In this document: piece by piece, positions 481-14,854 of the stretch
Layout: every line of letters begins with the position of its first letter
How positions within the stretch are numbered: the stretch's first letter is position 1
Source: Piromyces finnis finn
Taxonomy: Eukaryota > Fungi > Neocallimastigomycota
Assembly (NCBI GenBank): GCA_002104945.1
Contig: MCFH01000042.1
Coordinates: 372,001-436,000 of the forward strand
Length of the DNA: 64,000 nt
Reading direction: 5' to 3'
The notes under the pieces: generated by a model
Databases searched by the model: none
The model's input: only the letters and a program-made list of their open reading frames with translations
What the model was told of the DNA's origin: nothing
Translations under genes and position numbers: made by a program

Positions 481-710
<230 letters not shown>

Positions 711-1818
711 ATTGATAACTACTCTACAGTATATTATCCTTTAATAAAATATAATTCAAGTTATTGTATTATCATTAAAGAATTCAACCATTATCATTAT
801 CTTTTTCTTTCATTTCATTCCTATTAAAAAATTTATTTATTCCTTTTGATATTTAACTAAAAATTCTAATGTATCAATAGTTCTATATTTTATTGGTATC
901 ATCGTAATCACACTAATAAACTAGGATCGTTATTCCTAGAAAAAAGACGAAAATAGCAATACAATTAAAAAATAAACTAGTCATAATTATCTATAATTAT
1001 CGTATATTCAATATATCATTTCTTATTAGTATCCTCATAAATAAAAAAAAACATAGTTATATAATGTAATAATATTATTAACATCTTATAAAAATAGCTT
1101 GTTTTTGTATTTTATATAACAAAGTCATGACATTTTTTCAAAAAAGAAAAAAAAAACCTTTTAATTCTTTTAATTATTATTGAAAAGCTGTTTTCCTTCT
1201 TTCAAAAAAACTAGTTTAAAAAAATAAAATTTAAAAATAATTTAAAAATTCATTTGTGTAACCTTGAAAATTTAATTTATTTTAAATTAAATTTTTAATT
1301 ATCAACTTTTTTTAATTAAATAGAAATTCAATATTTAAAAAATATTTTTAAATGCAACTAGCTAGTCATACACACTTTTTTAATAATGCATTAAAAGGAA
1401 ATGACCTTTTTTATTTTACTTTTTTTTTATTTATTTGGCATGCGAAATATCTTTCGTATATAAAAAAAATGTTTTTTTAAAAATTATTAATTATTTAAAT
1501 TTAAAAAAAAAAATCAAAAAATTCATATTGCATGAAAAAAAAAAAAATGGACCGTTTATCCAATAAAAAGTGCATAAAAATGAAATTAAATGGCGTTTCT
1601 ATCAACATATCAACAGTCATTTTACATTGAATTAAAAACAAAAATTGTATTTATTGTATTTGTTATACACTTTATTACAGTCCTAGTAAAATTAGTACCA
1701 AGATAGTATCAAGATATTATAACATAACAAAAAAAAGTAACTATAGGATGTTATTACTCGTTATATGATATACCATTGAAATTCTACATGGAATATTATA
1801 ATATATACCATAAGGTAG

Positions 1819-1952
1819 AAGATAGACCATAATTTACTATAGGATATCATAGGATATCAAAAGAGATACCATAAAATATATTATAGAATATATCATAGAA
1901 TATTTAAAGATAGACCATAATTTACTATAGGATATCATAGGATATCAAAAGA
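1819..1952. repeat. 46-bp exact direct repeat (two copies, period 88 bp) in an ATAGGATATC-type minisatellite region
   Basis: AAGATAGACCATAATTTACTATAGGATATCATAGGATATCAAAAGA occurs at 1819-1864 and 1907-1952. Confidence 0.9.
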
Positions 1953-2697
1953 TTAATCATAAGATAACCTAGTATATATACACCTAATATTATAACAAAA
2001 GATAGCTATTGAAGCATTATCACAATTCATTGCAAAGAATGCAAATCATTATGAATTGATTGTAGTTCTTTAATTTTTCATTCCTTCATTATTTTTCAAA
2101 TACACTTTAAAAACAGCTATCAATCTCATTTCTTATTCATTTCATAAATAGTTTTGGTGTCCTTTCTTTTATACTTTTTTTTTTTTTCATTGACACTTTA
2201 CACCTTTTCACAATTTCACTTTTTCCTTTCTCTTGCTGATGAACAAAAAAAAACTTTGAACTTTTTTATAATTAATATATTATCAATATATTACAATGTA
2301 ATCAAATCTATTAAAGTTTTTTAATTAATAATACTTTTTTTTTTTAATTAAATTGGTTCTCTATTTCTTTTATAGATTAAGTATTGATATTGAAATAAAT
2401 ATAAATTAGTATATATTAAAAGTCAATTACGTATTCTATGGAATAGATATTCTATCAATAGAATTTATTTATATTTCATCATATATTAAATTGAATCATC
2501 CATTCATATTTCAAATTTAAACTATAAAATGATAAAAAAAAGGTGTCATCCTAATTAAATTAAATAATTATTAAATAATTAATATTAATATATACATACT
2601 ATATATTATAGACTATTCAATATTATATATTATTTAAATAATTTACTAATATTATCATCATTTATGATTAATTTATTATTTAATTATTATCTATATA

Positions 2698-2726
2698 AAT
2701 TTATTTATTTATTTATTCAATAATAT

Positions 2727-2769
<43 letters not shown>

Positions 2770-2960
2770 TTCATTCAATAATATTTATTCATTCATTCAA
2801 TAATATTTATTCATTCATTCAATAATATTTATTCATTCATTCAATAATATTTATTTATTTATTTATTTATTCATTCATTCAATAATATTTATTTATTTTA
2901 TTCATTTATTTATTGTTTAATAATATTTATTTATTTTATTCATTTATTTATTGTTTAATA
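2698..2960. repeat. Compound (ATTT/ATTC)n array punctuated by AATAAT
   Basis: Higher-order units of the form CAATAATATTTATT(T/C)ATT... are repeated several times. Confidence 0.9.
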
Positions 2961-3692
2961 ATAAAAAAAAACTTTATTACCTTTTTTAATTCTTTTTTTT
3001 TTTTATAATTTCATCAAATTATATTAAAATTAATAATTAATAAAAAAAAAAAAAAAAAAGCATTTTTAAAATTCATTTTCAGAATTGTAAAATATTAAAT
3101 TCCTTTTTTTTTATCTTTTCTTTATAATCTTACCTTTTAAATATATAAAAAATTGTATTCCTATTGCTATTATTCATCAGTAAAAAAAGAGGAAAGAAAC
3201 CTTTGAAATATTGTGCTAATCATTGAATAATAATCATTTATTTCAACAACCATATCCAATAGATATATCACTATATAAAATAAAAAAATAAAAAAAAACT
3301 ATACAAATACACCTAGTAATATATACCTTTTAATCCACTTGTAATATAAATCTACTAAAAAAAAAAAGAAAGAATAAAATAATAAAAATCACCTTTCACT
3401 TGATTTAAATATAAACTATACACAAATAAAAATTACTGTTTTTTTTTTTTTTTCATATAATTTTTTACAGTAATATTAAATTTTAACTTTTAAAAAAAAG
3501 TGTTATAATAGATTATTTGAAATTTGATATAGATATTAAATATTAAAATATAGTATTATGTATAGAAATAGATAGTGATAGATAGACAATGGGAATTAGT
3601 AATGATAAATGATGGTACAAAAAAAATAATAAAAAAAAAAAAAAATCTAATAATAGTATTATATATATATTAATTATTTCTATTTAATAGGA

Positions 3693-5519
3693 ATGTTAAT
3701 GTGTTCAGCTCTCAATATGAATATACCAGAAATTCCACCAATTGAACAACCACCAAGTTCTAACTGTCAAGTTAAACGTATTATATTTTGTCGTCATGCA
3801 GAAACAGCACCCAATGCAAGTTTTCAATTACAAGGTTCAGGAATAAATGAATATCTTAATAATAAGGGTGTAGGTCAAGCAGAGGCTTTAGCAAGACGTC
3901 TTTCCACACAAGAAGATATAGGTGTTATTATTACCAGTAATTTAAGAGTAAGAATATAACAAAAAAAAAAATAGCTATTCATGACTATATAAATTTTATT
4001 TTTACTTTCTTTAATAGTTATTAATAATTTCCTGAAAAAAAAAAAAAGACATTGCTATTATTTTATGTCCATATTTTTTTGAAAAAAAATAAAATATAAT
4101 GATAGACTAATTAAACTAATAATTAATGGATTACTTTTAAATTACATTTAAATTAGAGAGCTGTTCAAACCAGTGAAATTATTGCTGCTGCTTACCCAAA
4201 ATCATTTAATATTATTGTAACTATATAAAATTAATAGTCTAGCAAAAAAAATTTTTTTTTTTTTTTTTTTTTGATACTTTAATATTCGACGTTTTATAAT
4301 ATTATTAATATTACATTAATATTATATTCATTATTACTAATATTATAATTATACTCTATACTATGTATGGAAATAACAGCAAGAACCAGAATTAAGAGAA
4401 ATTTCATGGGGTGTATGGGAAGGTATGGTTTGTCCTGACTTGGACTCCTTAATTGAAAAATGGCAATCAGGCGACTTTACAGGTATAAAATAAAATTACA
4501 ACAAAAATGACAAATTGAAAAAAAAATAGAAAATAAAAAAAAACGCAAATGATAAAGTCAAACCATTTAATAAAAAAAAAGTGGTAATTAATAATATTTT
4601 TTATCTCAAAATAAAAAAAAAAAAATACAAATATTATTTCAAAAATAAAATAGCTTGTGCACCAGGTGGAGAAACTCCATTAGAAGTTAGAGAAAGAGTT
4701 CTCCCAATTATATATTCTTTATTAAAACGTCCAGAAAAAACAATATTAGTTGTTGGTATGTTTTCTCAAAAAATATTTATATATATATATATGAATATGT
4801 GGATATATTAGTAAAATGCAATTTAAAAATAGTAATTATAGTATCATAAATTGATACTATCTTTAACTATTAATAATAAATTAATAATTGAACCTTTTAT
4901 CTATTGCTCTAATTATTAACTAAAATCTTTATTGCTATTCTATTATTTATACAATATTATTTATCTCTCTATCTATCATACGTTTTTTTTCAATATCATT
5001 ATTTTCAAAAAAAAAAAAAAAAAAAAAATATTATTGTAATAATAAATAGTTCATGGAAGATTATTACGTATTTTATTATCCTCCATACTTTATGGAAATT
5101 TGTATCATATGCAATCCTTTAACCATAGAAATACATGTGTTAATATTGTTGATGTCTACTACGAACCAACCGAAAGTAAAACTTCACCAACCGTTTTAAG
5201 TAAAATGTCAAGTTTAAAAAATTATGAACCAAAACAAAATCAACTCTATCCATTAGTAAAAAGTATCTCTGGTGGTGGTATTATTATTTCACCAATACCG
5301 GTTAATTCCGATAAAAGAAATACTAGTTATAAAGATTCCTGTGAATCCTCCTTAAGAATAAAGTCTACAGCAACAAAAAATTATTCCAGTGAAACTAAAA
5401 CTTGTACAGAATATGAAACTCCAATATTAGATATAGATCTCTCTGGTCAAAATTATAAGGTTAAATTTATGCCTGTTATTCTTGACAGTATAGAACATTT
5501 AACTGCTGATTTATATTAA
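3693..5519 (+). CDS. Histidine phosphatase superfamily (phosphoglycerate mutase-like, branch 1) protein, 5 exons
   Basis: Exons ~3693-3947, 4157-4216, 4380-4482, 4654-4755 and 5050-5519 are joined by GT-AG introns in frame. Motifs: RHAET (RHG-like), NLR/RAVQT, LREISWGVWEG, GGETPLEVRER, VVVHGRLLR. The start codon is uncertain; a tiny upstream exon near 3589 is possible. Confidence 0.88.
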
Positions 5520-6550
5520 AAAAAAAAAAAAAAAGAGGAATGGGAAATGGGGATTTAATAAGGATTAAAAAATAAAAAAAAAAAAAAGTTTTTTTTTTTA
5601 ATTATTTATTTATTTATTGAACCTATTTTTTTTTTAAAACAAATATTCATCATTCATCCTCACCTCCACATATTCCATAGTTGTAATAATAATAATTAAA
5701 TGTTGGTCTTTTTTTAAACGTATACAAATATATAAATATAAATTAAACATAATAAAGCACAAAATAAAGAATAAAACAAAATAAAAATAGTTTTTTTTTT
5801 TTTTTTTTATTTTCATATGCTTTTCAAAAAAAAAAAAAAATTTTTTTATGGTTTATAGTTTATGGTTTAAAATTTCATAAACTTTAATTTTTTGGATAGG
5901 ATTTAAAAGTTTGGAATGACATAAATAGAATAATAAAATTGTATAAAATAACAAAGTATTAGCCCAACATGATAATAAAAAAGCACACTATTATATATAT
6001 AGTATTTGGTAAAAAAAAAGAGATTTAATTCTTGACTTTTTTTTTTTTTTTTATCAAGAAATATTAATAAATCTTTCAAGAATAATACCTCCTTTTATGA
6101 TATCAAATTATATTTAGATAGGTAACTTTCTTTGTAAAAAGAAAAAAGTTTTCAAAGGGTTACAATTATACTTTTTTTTTAAAGTCCCTTTTAATGCTTT
6201 TATCATTTAAAAAAAGTATAAATTCTTGATAAATCACTTTTTTAAAATAATAATAATAATATATAATTGATATTTTTATATATTATTATTCATGCCATTA
6301 TTTAACAGACAAAAAAAAAATACATTATTTCAACTTTATTAAACCTATCTATTTTTATTAATGTTATGAAAAAGTAATCCACAATATATTTTGCTTTATC
6401 CATTATTCCTAACAATATGGATTATAAATTTTTTAAAGTGGTAATGGACAAATGGACATCCTATGAATATTAATAAAAGAAGAGTGACTATATTTTAAAT
6501 AATAATTTTGTATATAAAACTTTTTTATATAAAAAAAAAGTTTCAAAAAA

Positions 6551-9291: not shown

Positions 9292-10761
9292 TCATTCATC
9301 ATCACTTTCAGCAACTTCACGAACAGAATCATCTTCAATATCCCCAAATTGTATGGAATCTTCTTCCTCCTCAGAATCACTTAAATCTTCTTCGTCAGAG
9401 AAAGAAAACATCCAGGAAGGAACATGATTAATTAAATCATTGACATAGTCTATATCTTTTAATTCATAATCGTAATATTCACTTGGAATAAAGGTATCGG
9501 TGGTAAAGGTAGCATTAATCCAATCTGGATGTTTTTTACCTTTAGCAAGATCTTGAGCGATTCTATTTTGAACTTTAAATTTAAAGGATTGTTCTGCCAA
9601 TCCATTAATATCAATTAATTTTCCATTATATTCTGATTGATGATCATGAAAGATATAACCACCATAACTATAGACAATAACATCATCAGAGTCTGGAATG
9701 TCATCATTTCCAATGTAATTAAATGAGTTACGCTCGGATACAACATTGGATTCGACGCCTAATCCAATAAAATATTGTGGGAAGGCATCATCATCACTAT
9801 GGAAATAATTATTTACGGTATAGGATGGGTAGGCGGGATGGAAAGTTTCAGCATAATAATAATTGTTAAAGGTATGAACCTTACCAAAACGTACACGAGG
9901 TAAACGTTCATTACAATTAATAAATACATTGTTACAGAGCGTGACGCATAAACGATCACGATCCGTTTTACGACTATCGCTATTTCCAATTAGTAACCCT
10001 TTTTTATGATTTTCAAAACGATTGTTGGAAAGGGTCACCTTGGTGGAACCATTAATCACATCAATAAGACCATCATGACTTTCAATATGTTGACCAAATA
10101 CAATAGGTTGAGTATCAAGACTAGTAGAGCCATCACTAAGGTAACAATTATCAATCCAAACATTGGTACTATTATTAATGGAAATGGCATCATATTCGGA
10201 ATTCCATGTTCCATTGACCCCATCGGTTGGAACAAATTTTGAAAAATAATCATTTGGGGCTTCAATATACAAATTTTTTATAATAATATTATCTGTATTT
10301 TTAACTTGAAGGGAAAGTTCTTTAAATCCAGCTTTATAGTCATGACCAATAATAGAGGTATTTGGGGGAATATCAATGTTGACTTGTTGATCTTGAAGAA
10401 TACGTCCTTCACTACGAAGACGAGTAATCTCTTGACATTCCTCTGTTTCTAAATAGGCTTTGGCGTCTTTAGTAAAACATGAAACATACTTTTCAAAAGA
10501 ATAACCAGGAATTAAACTTTCAAAATCAATCAAACTTCCATCTTCACGAGCTAAACCATTAATAAAAGATTCAATATAAATAATTTTTGGATCATTTGGC
10601 TTACCATGATTGACTAAAGCTTCTTTTAATTCATGATACGTTTTAACATGATATTCAATACCTCCTTCACCACCAGTGGTATCCTTTCCCCAACCAATCG
10701 GTGAGGAAGCTTGAACCACCATACCTAATAATAAACTAAAACTTAAAGATATAAATTTCAT
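9292..10761 (-). CDS. Secreted pectate lyase, polysaccharide lyase family 1 (Bacillus Pel-like), intronless, acidic C-terminal tail
   Basis: Signal peptide MKFISLSFSLLLGMVVQA; GWGKDTTGGEGG; IPPNTSIIG; WNSEYDAISI; VWIDN (vWiDH motif); HDGLID Ca-binding aspartates; HKKGLLIG; RLPRVRFGKVHTFNNYY (RxPxxR catalytic motif). No dockerin or CBM visible. Confidence 0.95.
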   Translation of the reverse strand: MKFISLSFSLLLGMVVQASSPIGWGKDTTGGEGGIEYHVKTYHELKEALVNHGKPNDPKIIYIESFINGLAREDGSLIDFESLIPGYSFEKYVSCFTKDAKAYLETEECQEITRLRSEGRILQDQQVNIDIPPNTSIIGHDYKAGFKELSLQVKNTDNIIIKNLYIEAPNDYFSKFVPTDGVNGTWNSEYDAISINNSTNVWIDNCYLSDGSTSLDTQPIVFGQHIESHDGLIDVINGSTKVTLSNNRFENHKKGLLIGNSDSRKTDRDRLCVTLCNNVFINCNERLPRVRFGKVHTFNNYYYAETFHPAYPSYTVNNYFHSDDDAFPQYFIGLGVESNVVSERNSFNYIGNDDIPDSDDVIVYSYGGYIFHDHQSEYNGKLIDINGLAEQSFKFKVQNRIAQDLAKGKKHPDWINATFTTDTFIPSEYYDYELKDIDYVNDLINHVPSWMFSFSDEEDLSDSEEEEDSIQFGDIEDDSVREVAESDDE

Positions 10762-11508
10762 TATTTCAATTTATTTTACGTTATAGATACTCTACATATA
10801 TCAATAATATAATAATGTTGTTATAAGTGAGGAAAATGAATAGATTTTTCTTTTTTTTTTTTATTTTGGTTTAAATTAAAAAAATAAGAGGGTTTTTCCA
10901 TTCTTTTATACTTGGAAAAAAAATTTTTTTTCGATATTCCATAAAAAAACTTTATTTCATGTAAATGACATAAAATAAATTAAAAAAAGAAAAATGCCTA
11001 ATTTGGAAAGAACATAAACTTTAAATAATAATAAAAATTAAAAAGAGGATGATTCATTTAGAAATGGGTTGAAAAAAAAAAAGTTGAATTTTTTTAAAGT
11101 GCCATTTAACTGTCATTGCAGTAGTCATTGAAAATAAGAGTAATTCTATTTATATATTTATCTGTTCAATAAGCCTATTATTAATTATTCTTTTTGAAAA
11201 ACTTTTCTTTCATAGCATTGACAAAAGTAAAGGGAAGAAAAAAAAAAATCAAAAAAAAATTGGTGTAACCTAAAAAAAATATTTAAATAAATTAAATTTT
11301 ACCCATAAAGACTGACTTGATAAAAAGGGAAATGAAAGGATGGATAATTAAAAAAAAAAAGTCCACTTTTTAAAAATTAAATATAGTTAGATAATAATAA
11401 ATAATAATAAATAATAAATAATATTGCGTATAATAATTAAATATAAAAAAAAAGTTTACTTTTTTTATATACATCATTTGTATAAAAAAAATGAATGACA
11501 TTTCATCT

Positions 11509-11511
<3 letters not shown>

Positions 11512-11560
<49 letters not shown>

Positions 11561-12693
11561 GGCATCAAATATTTTAAACTTTATTATTAATTTAATTAAA
11601 ATTATAATACATGTAATATAAAAATTAAAATAAAATAAAAATAAAAAAAATATGTTTAAATAAACACAATTGAATAAAAATTGGGTATAATGTATTCTAG
11701 TAATTTTAATTAAAGTAAGAAAGCCACTATCATACTAAAGTATAATAATTGTATTTGACTTCCAATGGGACACCGAGCCAAAGATCAAAATTTTGTCATG
11801 GAACAAAATTATGATCTCCATTGGTTGCGCTGGCCCTCCTGGCCTGTCTTACTGTTTCTTCAGCATTGACGCTCTTGGATGTTGCTTCAAACCTTTTGAA
11901 CATTGTCCATTGCTGGCCAATAGCAAAAGGCATGATTTTGGTTAGAAGTTCCGCGGTTACCGTCAAGAATGGTGTTCCTTCGTTAGTACCAGATTGAATC
12001 TGACGCTTACAAAGTTCTTTCCATTCCCTTGAATTGTAATTAAACTTGTTTGACTTTACTTTTCATTAAATATTTAAATTGGTAAAAAATTTGAATCAAG
12101 AATGTCGACACCAGAAAGCTTGTGGATAGTATTTTTACATGATGTAGAGTGAATCAGTCTCTTACAAGAAACAATACAACAATAGCTACATGAATATAAA
12201 AATACAATGCAAATGCTAAAGTTGACTACATTGGATTCTTACAAGAGAAGAGTAGTACTACATGAATACATGAATAAAAGAAAAAATACAGCAACAAAAT
12301 GTATTACTCTTCTAATTAAATACTATACAAACTTACCTGAATATCAAACATTCAACTTATTCATCAAATACTTAATTCGATGAATAAAATGTTTTTTAAT
12401 CGCTCAGTACCATGAGCTTAGTCCTAATAATTTTCCCTTAAAGACTAACCAAGCATCCATTGCGCAATGCTTGGATTTAATTCTTTCTACTCTCTCAGTA
12501 CCATGAGCATGAGTAGACCCCCTTGATAAACTCCATTATTAAATAAATGAAGGCACGTTCCTAAGAGGGCACCAAGCATCCATTGCGCAATACTTGGATT
12601 TAATTCTTTCTACTCTCTCAGTACCATGAGCATGAGTAGACCCCCTTGAGAAACTACATTTATTAAATAAATGAAGGCACGTTCCCAAGAGGG
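11512..12693 (-). mobile_element. Non-autonomous non-LTR retroposed element (SINE-like or internally deleted LINE), 1,182 bp, with poly(A) tail and 13-bp TSD
   Basis: Identical CATTTCATCTTGA flanks it at 11499-11511 and 12694-12706. A 46-nt T run at 11512-11557 is a poly(A) tail on the minus strand. The body is GC-richer than the flanks. There is no RT or endonuclease ORF. Confidence 0.88.
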
Positions 12694-12694
12694 C
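12448..12694 (-). repeat. Two tandem ~123-bp monomers at the 5' end of the retroelement
   Basis: 12448-12570 and 12571-12694 differ by 4 substitutions and 1 indel. The 15-mer CTCAGTACCATGAGC recurs a third time at 12403-12417. Confidence 0.95.
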
Positions 12695-13153
12695 ATTTCA
12701 TCTTGAATGCTTTTTTTTTCTTTTTTTTTTATATATATATGTCTTGCTTTCTTTTTAAGGTACACAACTATACTTTTTACACTCGTAAAATATTCTCTTT
12801 TTTTTTTATTTTTTATTTGTTTTTTAATTTTTCTTTTCTATTTAATAAATTAAGGTATGAATGAATTAAATAAATTTCAAAACTTTTTTTTCTTGTTTTT
12901 TTTTTTTTTTCTCTAGGTAGAATATATTGAGTTTAAATAAATTATTAATTGAAATAAATAAAATGATCTATAATAAATACAAACTTAAATTAAGATAAAT
13001 AAATATATAAACTATAAAATTCCCCTTCCATCTTTTTTTTTTCCAATAATTCAAAAAAAGTTAAATATAAAAATGACTATAATTAGGAAAATAAATAAGA
13101 AAAAATTTGTATAAAAATATCCCTCTATCTATATAAGTCACTCTATTTTCTTT

Positions 13154-14854
13154 TTAATTCTTTCCATCATTAATGACAACCTTGATTTCTGAATTTTTAT
13201 TGTTGTCAACATTATCACCTCCTTGAATTGTTTCGACATCAGTTGATGCAGCTTCATTAACAGATGAAGCTTCAATGACAGTACTGATTTCAGATTCATT
13301 AATTGATTTTTTATCAAGATCCTTTTTCTTTTCGCTAATATCGGTAATATCAATTTCAACTGATTCCTTATCATCATTTATTTTCTTTTCAATTGGATCT
13401 TCGATCTTTTTTTCGATAGCCTTTTTAGCTTTTGATGGACTCTTAGTTTGTTGACAGGCAAATATACCAATTAAAAAGACAATAAAGGATAAAGCAGCCA
13501 TAACTAAAAATACAACATTAACACCATACATTTCTGGGCTTTCCTTTTTATGTCTTACAGCATTAGCAACCTTAGTCATAATGGAAATGTAACAAGCAGA
13601 ACCGATAGCACCAGAGACAGCACGTAAGGAATTGTAAAGAGCAGTAGCATCAGAAGTTTTGGTTTTTGGTATATCAATCATACTCCAAGTAACTAAAGGC
13701 ATTAAAAGAATACCAATAGAAATACATCTAGCAATATTAATAAGAGAATAAATCCAAACACTTTGATGAACATTAATAAAGTAAACAACCAAGTTACTAA
13801 CGCATAATAATACTGGACCAATAATAATTAATGGCTTAATTCCGATTTTATCATAAATACGACCAGCTAATGGACTCATTACAGCTAAAGCTAAAGAACC
13901 TGGTAATAAAACTAAACCTGAAGTAGTAGCTGATTCACCCTTGATTTGTTGTACATAAACTGGAACGACAATAGCAGAACCCATAATAGTGAATTGTAAA
14001 ACAACAGTAGCAATAGAACTGATTAAATAATTCTTATCCTTCATAACACGAATATCCAAAAATGGTACCTTGACCTTTAATTGACGTGGGAAGAATACTA
14101 AACCAGCGAGGATACCAATAATTAATGGTACTAAAACTTCATAACTAACAAAATCGTTTGTACCAACATTACTAATGGCTAAAGTGACACCACCAAAAGT
14201 GAGTATACTTAAAAAGAATGAAATAAAGTCAAATTGCTTTCTCATTACTGGAAGAACATCATCGAAAATACAAATAGCCCATATTAAAGAAATGATCATA
14301 ATACCGATAGCAATATAGAAAATAGTTCTCCAACCAATTGAGTCAACAAGAACACCAGCTACAGTAGGAGCAATAATAGGAGCAACACCAAAAGATAAAC
14401 CATACCAACCCATCATAGCACCAATTTTTTCTTTTGGGAAAATTGTTAAAATAATAACTTGACCAATTGACGATAATAAACCATTACCAGCACCTTGAAT
14501 AATTCTTCCTGCTAACATCAAATAGAAACTTTTACTAAGAGAACAAATGATTAAACCACCAATAAAGAAACCAACAGCAATAAAGTATAATGGTTTAGTT
14601 CTAAATCTAGTAATAAGGTAGGCAGTAAATGGAGTCATAACAGCTAAACATAAAATGAAACCACTAGTTAACCATTGACCAGTGTTTACAGTAATATTAA
14701 GATCTTTCATAATTGGAGGTAAGGCGGTTGTTAAAGAGGTAGCAAGCATTGAAGAAGCTACAGAATTGATAGTGATATTTAAAAATATCAAAATACTTTT
14801 TTTGTAGGAAACTTTCTTTCCCTCTGAAATAATTAAATTATCCGTTTTTTCCAT
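13154..14854 (-). CDS. MFS drug:H+ antiporter-2 (DHA2, EmrB/QacA/LmrB-like) transporter, intronless, bacterial-type
   Basis: About 14 hydrophobic segments. Motifs: LTTALPPIMKDL, GQWLTSGFIL, AGRIIQGAGNG, GLSFGVAPIIAPTVAG, GWRTIF, PFLDIRV, SGLVLLPG, GRIYDKIG. Charged C-terminal tail of ~95 aa. Confidence 0.93.
   Translation of the reverse strand: MEKTDNLIISEGKKVSYKKSILIFLNITINSVASSMLATSLTTALPPIMKDLNITVNTGQWLTSGFILCLAVMTPFTAYLITRFRTKPLYFIAVGFFIGGLIICSLSKSFYLMLAGRIIQGAGNGLLSSIGQVIILTIFPKEKIGAMMGWYGLSFGVAPIIAPTVAGVLVDSIGWRTIFYIAIGIMIISLIWAICIFDDVLPVMRKQFDFISFFLSILTFGGVTLAISNVGTNDFVSYEVLVPLIIGILAGLVFFPRQLKVKVPFLDIRVMKDKNYLISSIATVVLQFTIMGSAIVVPVYVQQIKGESATTSGLVLLPGSLALAVMSPLAGRIYDKIGIKPLIIIGPVLLCVSNLVVYFINVHQSVWIYSLINIARCISIGILLMPLVTWSMIDIPKTKTSDATALYNSLRAVSGAIGSACYISIMTKVANAVRHKKESPEMYGVNVVFLVMAALSFIVFLIGIFACQQTKSPSKAKKAIEKKIEDPIEKKINDDKESVEIDITDISEKKKDLDKKSINESEISTVIEASSVNEAASTDVETIQGGDNVDNNKNSEIKVVINDGKN

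Follow-up and report, generated by a model that had tools for sequence, protein, structure and literature searches.

An internally deleted copy of a 5651-bp LINE, with both of its ends kept, lies between positions 11499 and 12706 of the window, by which the whole 64,000-nucleotide stretch of Piromyces finnis DNA analysed here is meant. In all probability an L1-like non-LTR retrotransposon (LINE) gave rise to it in one recent event of target-primed reverse transcription, and the inserted copy is non-coding. The anatomy of the insertion, its parent element, the uniqueness of its deletion junction, the pattern of target-site duplications (TSDs) across the family and the youth of the copy are established directly. 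The copy itself is ordinary mobile-DNA debris, dead on arrival and non-coding. It is useful as a clean marker of a young, apparently L1-like family in an anaerobic gut fungus, of the properties of that family, as copies of this kind directly show its termini, its TSD length (~13 bp) and its nick preference, and of a possible regulatory effect on a neighbouring gene. The features of the insertion and of its two neighbouring genes are as follows.

9292-10761, minus strand: pectate lyase gene, an intronless ORF (PF00544, E 2e-38)
11499-11511, no strand: TSD copy beside the poly(A), CATTTCATCTTGA on the plus strand and TCAAGATGAAATG on the element strand; exact match of 12694-12706, also recovered by the TSD script
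11512-11557, minus strand: uninterrupted poly(A) tail, A46 (T46 on the plus strand), abutting the left TSD copy
11558-11795, minus strand: LINE 3' UTR, equal to positions 5414-5651 of the full-length copy
11796-12040, minus strand: LINE ORF remnant, the last 80 codons and the stop, without start codon and without RT
12041-12043, minus strand: deletion junction from a three-way alignment, a 3-nt microhomology (TAA) common to both parental segments
12041-12447, minus strand: non-repeated part of the LINE 5' UTR, equal to full-length positions 247-653, stopping 236 nt short of the parent's ATG
12448-12570, minus strand: 5' monomer 2, 123 bp (repeat families D2 and D7), 97% identical to monomer 1
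12571-12693, minus strand: 5' monomer 1, with the exact 5' end of the element at 12693; the element strand begins CCCTCTTGGGAACG
12694-12706, no strand: TSD copy beside the element's 5' end, an exact repeat (TSD script)
13154-14854, minus strand: MFS transporter gene, an intronless ORF (PF07690, E 7e-55)

The direct repeat CATTTCATCTTGA at 11499-11511 and 12694-12706, and the T46 run abutting its left copy, were both seen as the initial annotation had described them. Since the bases outside the two repeat copies are not the same (a/g beside the left one, t/a beside the right one), the TSD is exactly 13 bp long. In addition, the repeat is not a chance match, since both of its inner edges coincide with termini of the LINE family, the 5' end, placed immediately after ...CCCAAGAGGG, recurring in dozens of copies and the 3' end, GATGCCGTT with poly(A) after it, being found 529 times genome-wide. 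Between the tail and the right TSD copy the body measures 1136 bp, the element lying on the minus strand, with an AATAAA signal at 11580-11585 (minus strand), 22 nt ahead of the tail. The G+C content ranges from 29 to 42% in the body versus 13-19% in the flanks, and the ORFs overlapping the element do not exceed 58 aa, in agreement with the GC-richer body devoid of RT that had been proposed. Likewise, the reported lack of a tRNA-type head was borne out, with 0 tRNA genes detected by ARAGORN in the whole window and no Rfam match above chance for the element.

A long parent with the same ends and an RT-bearing ORF, the existence of which the initial annotation had envisaged, was found in the genome as a LINE of 5651 bp, whose parts are given below for a natural full-length copy.

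G000:C167:816575-822225 (L045 1076-6726), minus strand: natural full-length copy, body 5651 bp, A73 tail
889 nt of the L045 copy, minus strand: parent 5' UTR, opening with two 123-bp monomers
Positions 890-5413 of the full-length copy, minus strand: parent ORF, 1507 aa
238 nt, minus strand: parent 3' UTR, with AATAAA 22 nt ahead of the tail

The monomers (full-length positions 1-123 and 125-246) repeat in every full-length copy, and the loci carrying the 653-bp 5' part run on into the long ORF, which is 1507 aa in L032 and is present in pieces in L031. The parent ORF matches RVT_1 with E 1.3e-35 (123.5 bits versus a cut-off of 29.6), and its best relatives in the PDB are human L1 ORF2p (E 5e-33) and then R2 proteins (E 2e-17), so that the parent LINE would be placed as L1-like according to the relative E-values against solved structures. 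In the region preceding the RT, residues ~345-455, the matches to Exo_endo_phos (22.1 bits, cut-off 24.5) and Exo_endo_phos_2 (18.4 bits) were both sub-threshold, while the nearest ESM Atlas neighbours of this endonuclease region, as obtained with a language-model neighbour search, were LINE-1 ORF2/Exo_endo_phos clusters (score 0.95); the same region alone, compared with the PDB by sequence, gave no match. An APE-type endonuclease located N-terminal to the RT in the parent ORF is considered likely, its position and the TSDs being those which such an enzyme would fit. Near the C-terminus of the ORF a faint match to zf-RVT was obtained. Residues 1 to ~220 of the 1507-aa ORF (L032 9178-9837, minus strand) matched no Pfam family, and the 889-nt 5' UTR showed no separate ORF1; these N-terminal ~220 residues might constitute a fused ORF1-like domain. 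No description of this LINE family in anaerobic fungi was found in the literature searched.

The window copy is made of the two extremes of this parent. LINE positions 1-653 correspond to window positions 12693-12041 and LINE positions 5169-5651 to window positions 12040-11558, with an identity to the full-length copy L045 of 99.8% and 99.4%, respectively, and the 4515 bp in between (positions 654-5168), which include the ATG, the endonuclease region and the RT, are missing. In the full-length copies, the 5' 653-bp and 3' 483-bp segments form the ends of the 5651 bp and flank the 1507-aa ORF; all 80 of the 80 residues of the ORF remnant are identical to residues 1428-1507 of the full-length copy. 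Each half of the window copy is present at 97-100% identity in at least 40 genomic loci, and for the 3' segment (1-483) seven other loci reach a rounded identity of 100% (867 bits versus 872 for the self-match). When the genome was searched with the body, the 653-bp part (12041-12693) and the part spanning 11558-12050 matched different places, and the only end-to-end match was the window. Since the nearest relatives of both halves are the same full-length copies (C199, C182 and C167), with ~1 mismatch per half, the window copy must be very young and its halves must derive from one source lineage. The resulting total of ~2 differences in 1136 bp upholds the earlier view that the insertion was recent.

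The deletion junction itself occurs once. A 27-nt junction string searched with up to 2 mismatches gave 1 match in the 56.5-Mb genome, namely the window copy, and a 111-bp query across the junction gave a full-length match to the window alone; therefore, the assembly contains neither a family built in this way nor a master or offspring of the window copy. The copies foreseen in the initial annotation were thus found in part: there are many of each half, and others carry their own TSDs, whereas a shared internal junction was not encountered, being confined to the window copy. Two candidate origins of the junction were rejected. Splicing would require GT..AG boundaries, which appear in none of the 4 registers allowed by the TAA microhomology, and a recurrent RT stop at LINE position ~5169 was discarded because the pieces ending at query positions 483-486 were an artefact of the query end, the mapping on the full-length element showing that they run further. 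A second internally deleted copy was located elsewhere in the genome:

L048 2470-4008 (G000:C151:642469-644007), minus strand: LINE positions 1-1349, an 11-nt filler (GGATTGTTGAA) and positions 5476-5651, with an A32 tail

This copy on C151 has a perfect 13-bp TSD of its own (TCAATCTGATACT) and sits inside another copy of the same LINE family. Deletion products in which both ends are kept recur in this family, with at least 2 copies whose junctions differ.

The parent family is numerous, very young and probably still active. Genome-wide, 529 exact junctions of the 3' end with A10 were counted, while the reversed control gave 0, and exact 5'-end motifs amounted to 258. The pairing of 5' and 3' ends was confined to contigs C1-C65, where both end lists are complete, and in these ~38 distinct copies bear a 5' end, of which ~28 are full length (3' end 5506-5923 bp downstream), full-length copies thus being the commonest class among those that bear a 5' end. 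Many full-length copies are at least 99% identical. Bodies of 5506-5529 bp make up a second size class among the paired copies.

The arrangement of the copies is also peculiar. Within the same contigs, 9 of the ~38 5' ends have the tail of another copy 41-602 bp upstream on the same strand, versus an expectation of ~0.3%, and in the family 5' ends frequently have pieces of LINE sequence attached. Head-to-tail examples can be seen in L012, L026, L033 and L034, and the gap from the tail to the exact 5' end is sometimes as short as 2-10 nt. An insertion hot spot at the monomer site between GGTCTA and CTCATGCTCAT was considered and rejected, since the loci sampled had been selected for their 5' UTRs, a source of bias, and the exact junction of A10 with CTCATGCTCATGG is present in 4 of the 529 tails; the head-to-tail tendency in a looser form survives the unbiased check, with no single hot-spot site accounting for it. 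The 5' junction of the family is variable, since in some full-length copies, such as L054 (G000:C1:2521080-2521290) and L082 (G000:C57:540420-540710), a further, incomplete 5' end separates the TSD from the true one; it amounts to 32 nt in one and a whole monomer in the other.

Two further arrangements were observed. Locus L049 (G000:C1:1537300-1541600) contains 4 tandem units of ~943 bp, three of them whole, each consisting of LINE positions 4723-5651 plus ~A28 and about equally diverged (95.2-95.4%), while the first unit (96.6%) begins at position 4667 at the locus edge. The motif TGCTGAAGAAA is found at the start of each unit and also at the downstream junction, and the array looks like a tandem duplication of one 5'-truncated copy. 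Moreover, full-length copies on different contigs (L056/L057 on G000:C7, L074/L075 on G000:C61, and also L009 and L015) have identical flanks on both sides, suggesting either segmental duplication or redundancy among the contigs.

With respect to the target site, the TSDs of 16 copies (the window copy and 15 others) measure 11-15 bp, most often 13, these lengths counting A residues possibly hidden in the tail, and the tails of the other family copies range from A13 to A73. The nicked strand in the window reads 5'-CATCTTGA^ATGC-3'. Immediately 3' of the nick, the other copies nearly always show A, as does the window copy, and T is frequent among the bases on its 5' side. The family preference is a relaxed version of that of L1. 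The initial annotation was correct in stating that the target is not the TT/AAAA consensus, though the site does fit the loose pattern of the family.

In the proposed sequence of events, the LINE endonuclease would have nicked the plus strand at the site just given, and the freed 3'-OH would have primed reverse transcription on the poly(A) of a LINE RNA, giving rise to the T46 of the plus strand. Copying by the RT would then have covered the terminal 483 nt (3' UTR and final 80 codons) before going on from 5' UTR position 653, through both 123-bp monomers, up to the true 5' end of the RNA. A second nick 13 bp away would account for the TSD. There is good support for target-primed reverse transcription carried out by the protein of the family itself, since the tail abuts a TSD copy, the TSD has the length usual for the family and the 5' end is exactly that of the family, and these same three traits substantiate the mechanism already put forward in the initial annotation.

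As for the succession of steps and the way in which the deletion arose, both of which we infer, an even chance is given to a template switch of the RT within the same insertion event as the cause of the 4515-bp gap with its 3-nt microhomology. This reading is favoured because the copy is extremely young, because a second young copy keeps both ends with a filler in between, because LINE stretches are often joined to 5' ends and because tails are juxtaposed to heads far above chance. A normal insertion of a full-length 5.65-kb copy, the middle of which was lost later by microhomology-mediated end joining or replication slippage, is a serious contender and nearly as likely as the template switch: a junction microhomology of 3 nt is typical of such repair, and full length is the commonest state among the copies keeping their 5' end (~28 of ~38 in C1-C65). 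Nevertheless, the ~2 differences from the youngest full-length copies leave little time for a second event, the other young copy retaining both ends has a filler at its junction, and reverse-transcribed pieces often appear joined to 5' ends in this family. Intact ends and an intact TSD would be left by either route, the two of them fitting equally in this respect, and under either origin the window copy has no start codon, no endonuclease and no RT and has not been copied again.

A functional non-autonomous retroposon would have resulted if the RNA had already been deleted, whether from a deleted master or by aberrant RNA processing, and had been mobilised in trans by the protein of a full-length copy. 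The window copy does keep the full 5' monomer region (a putative internal promoter), the 3' UTR and the AATAAA, which is all that such an RNA would need, and at least 2 different deleted derivatives exist; nevertheless, the absence of the junction from every other copy of the 56-Mb assembly, which leaves neither master nor offspring, together with the exclusion of canonical splicing in every register of the microhomology, makes this origin improbable. The mobilisation in trans advanced in the initial annotation was accordingly not sustained, no progenitor with the junction having been found and the deletion being one that may have arisen during the insertion or afterwards. That annotation had also left the choice between a SINE family and an internally deleted LINE, of which the latter stands, given the RT-bearing parent of 5651 bp sharing both termini, and the former falls with the single occurrence of the junction. 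Membership of a family of short SINEs or SINE-like elements with tails derived from a LINE, which the small size, the lack of coding capacity, the poly(A) tail and the flanking TSD would suggest, can in fact hardly be entertained when ARAGORN and Rfam reveal no tRNA, 7SL or 5S head, the body is collinear with the LINE at every base and the unique junction refutes a family, unless the assembly collapsed identical copies. An exact 25-nt pattern for the empty site gave 0 matches in metagenome contigs, which is uninformative. In a broader reading, which is regarded as rather unlikely, copies joining the 5' monomer/UTR module to the 3' end would be made repeatedly, by RT template switching or from trans-mobilised short RNAs. 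If this were true, the repeated both-ends-kept copies and the head-to-tail chains would make Piromyces finnis a natural system with unusually frequent template jumping by a LINE RT.

Regarding its surroundings, the element lies between the MFS transporter and pectate lyase genes, all three being on the minus strand. The pectate lyase gene, like the very AT-rich DNA between genes, is in keeping with an anaerobic gut fungus. The stop of the MFS transporter is separated by 448 bp from the right TSD copy (12706) and by 461 bp from the 5' end of the element (12693), and on the tail side 738 bp separate the pectate lyase ATG from the left TSD copy, close to the ~750 bp upstream placement, in the same orientation, that had been indicated. 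The insertion thus brings a monomeric LINE 5' UTR, a putative promoter module, and a poly(A) signal into the upstream region of the pectate lyase gene, in the same direction. An effect on the expression of this gene, which encodes a plant-cell-wall-degrading enzyme, would be speculation.

Compared with known systems, the parent LINE resembles L1 in the predicted order of endonuclease and then RT and in having human L1 ORF2p as its best solved relative, and the family does so in its tail following its own AATAAA, in TSDs of 11-15 bp and in the many copies that are 5'-truncated. The 5' UTR, built of tandem monomers (here two of 123 bp), recalls mouse L1, which has monomeric promoters. Unlike L1, the parent has a single ORF of 1507 aa, with no separate ORF1 found, the family nick is roughly (T/A)^A instead of TTTT^AA, and the share of full-length copies is very high.

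Internally deleted LINEs keeping both ends include TRE5-A.2 and TRE5-A.3 of Dictyostelium and the internally rearranged L1 insertions of cell-culture assays, and the window copy is similar to these in retaining the 5' UTR and the 3' end, an intact TSD and the poly(A), with the coding middle lost. TRE5-A.2 is an amplified, trans-mobilised subfamily, whereas the junction of the window copy is unique and that of the second deleted copy differs from it. Finally, although the window copy is set apart from SINEs by having no pol III-type head, no family of the same architecture and a body that is wholly LINE, it shares with them the condition of a short, non-coding, poly(A)-tailed and TSD-flanked element that depends on the machinery of a LINE.
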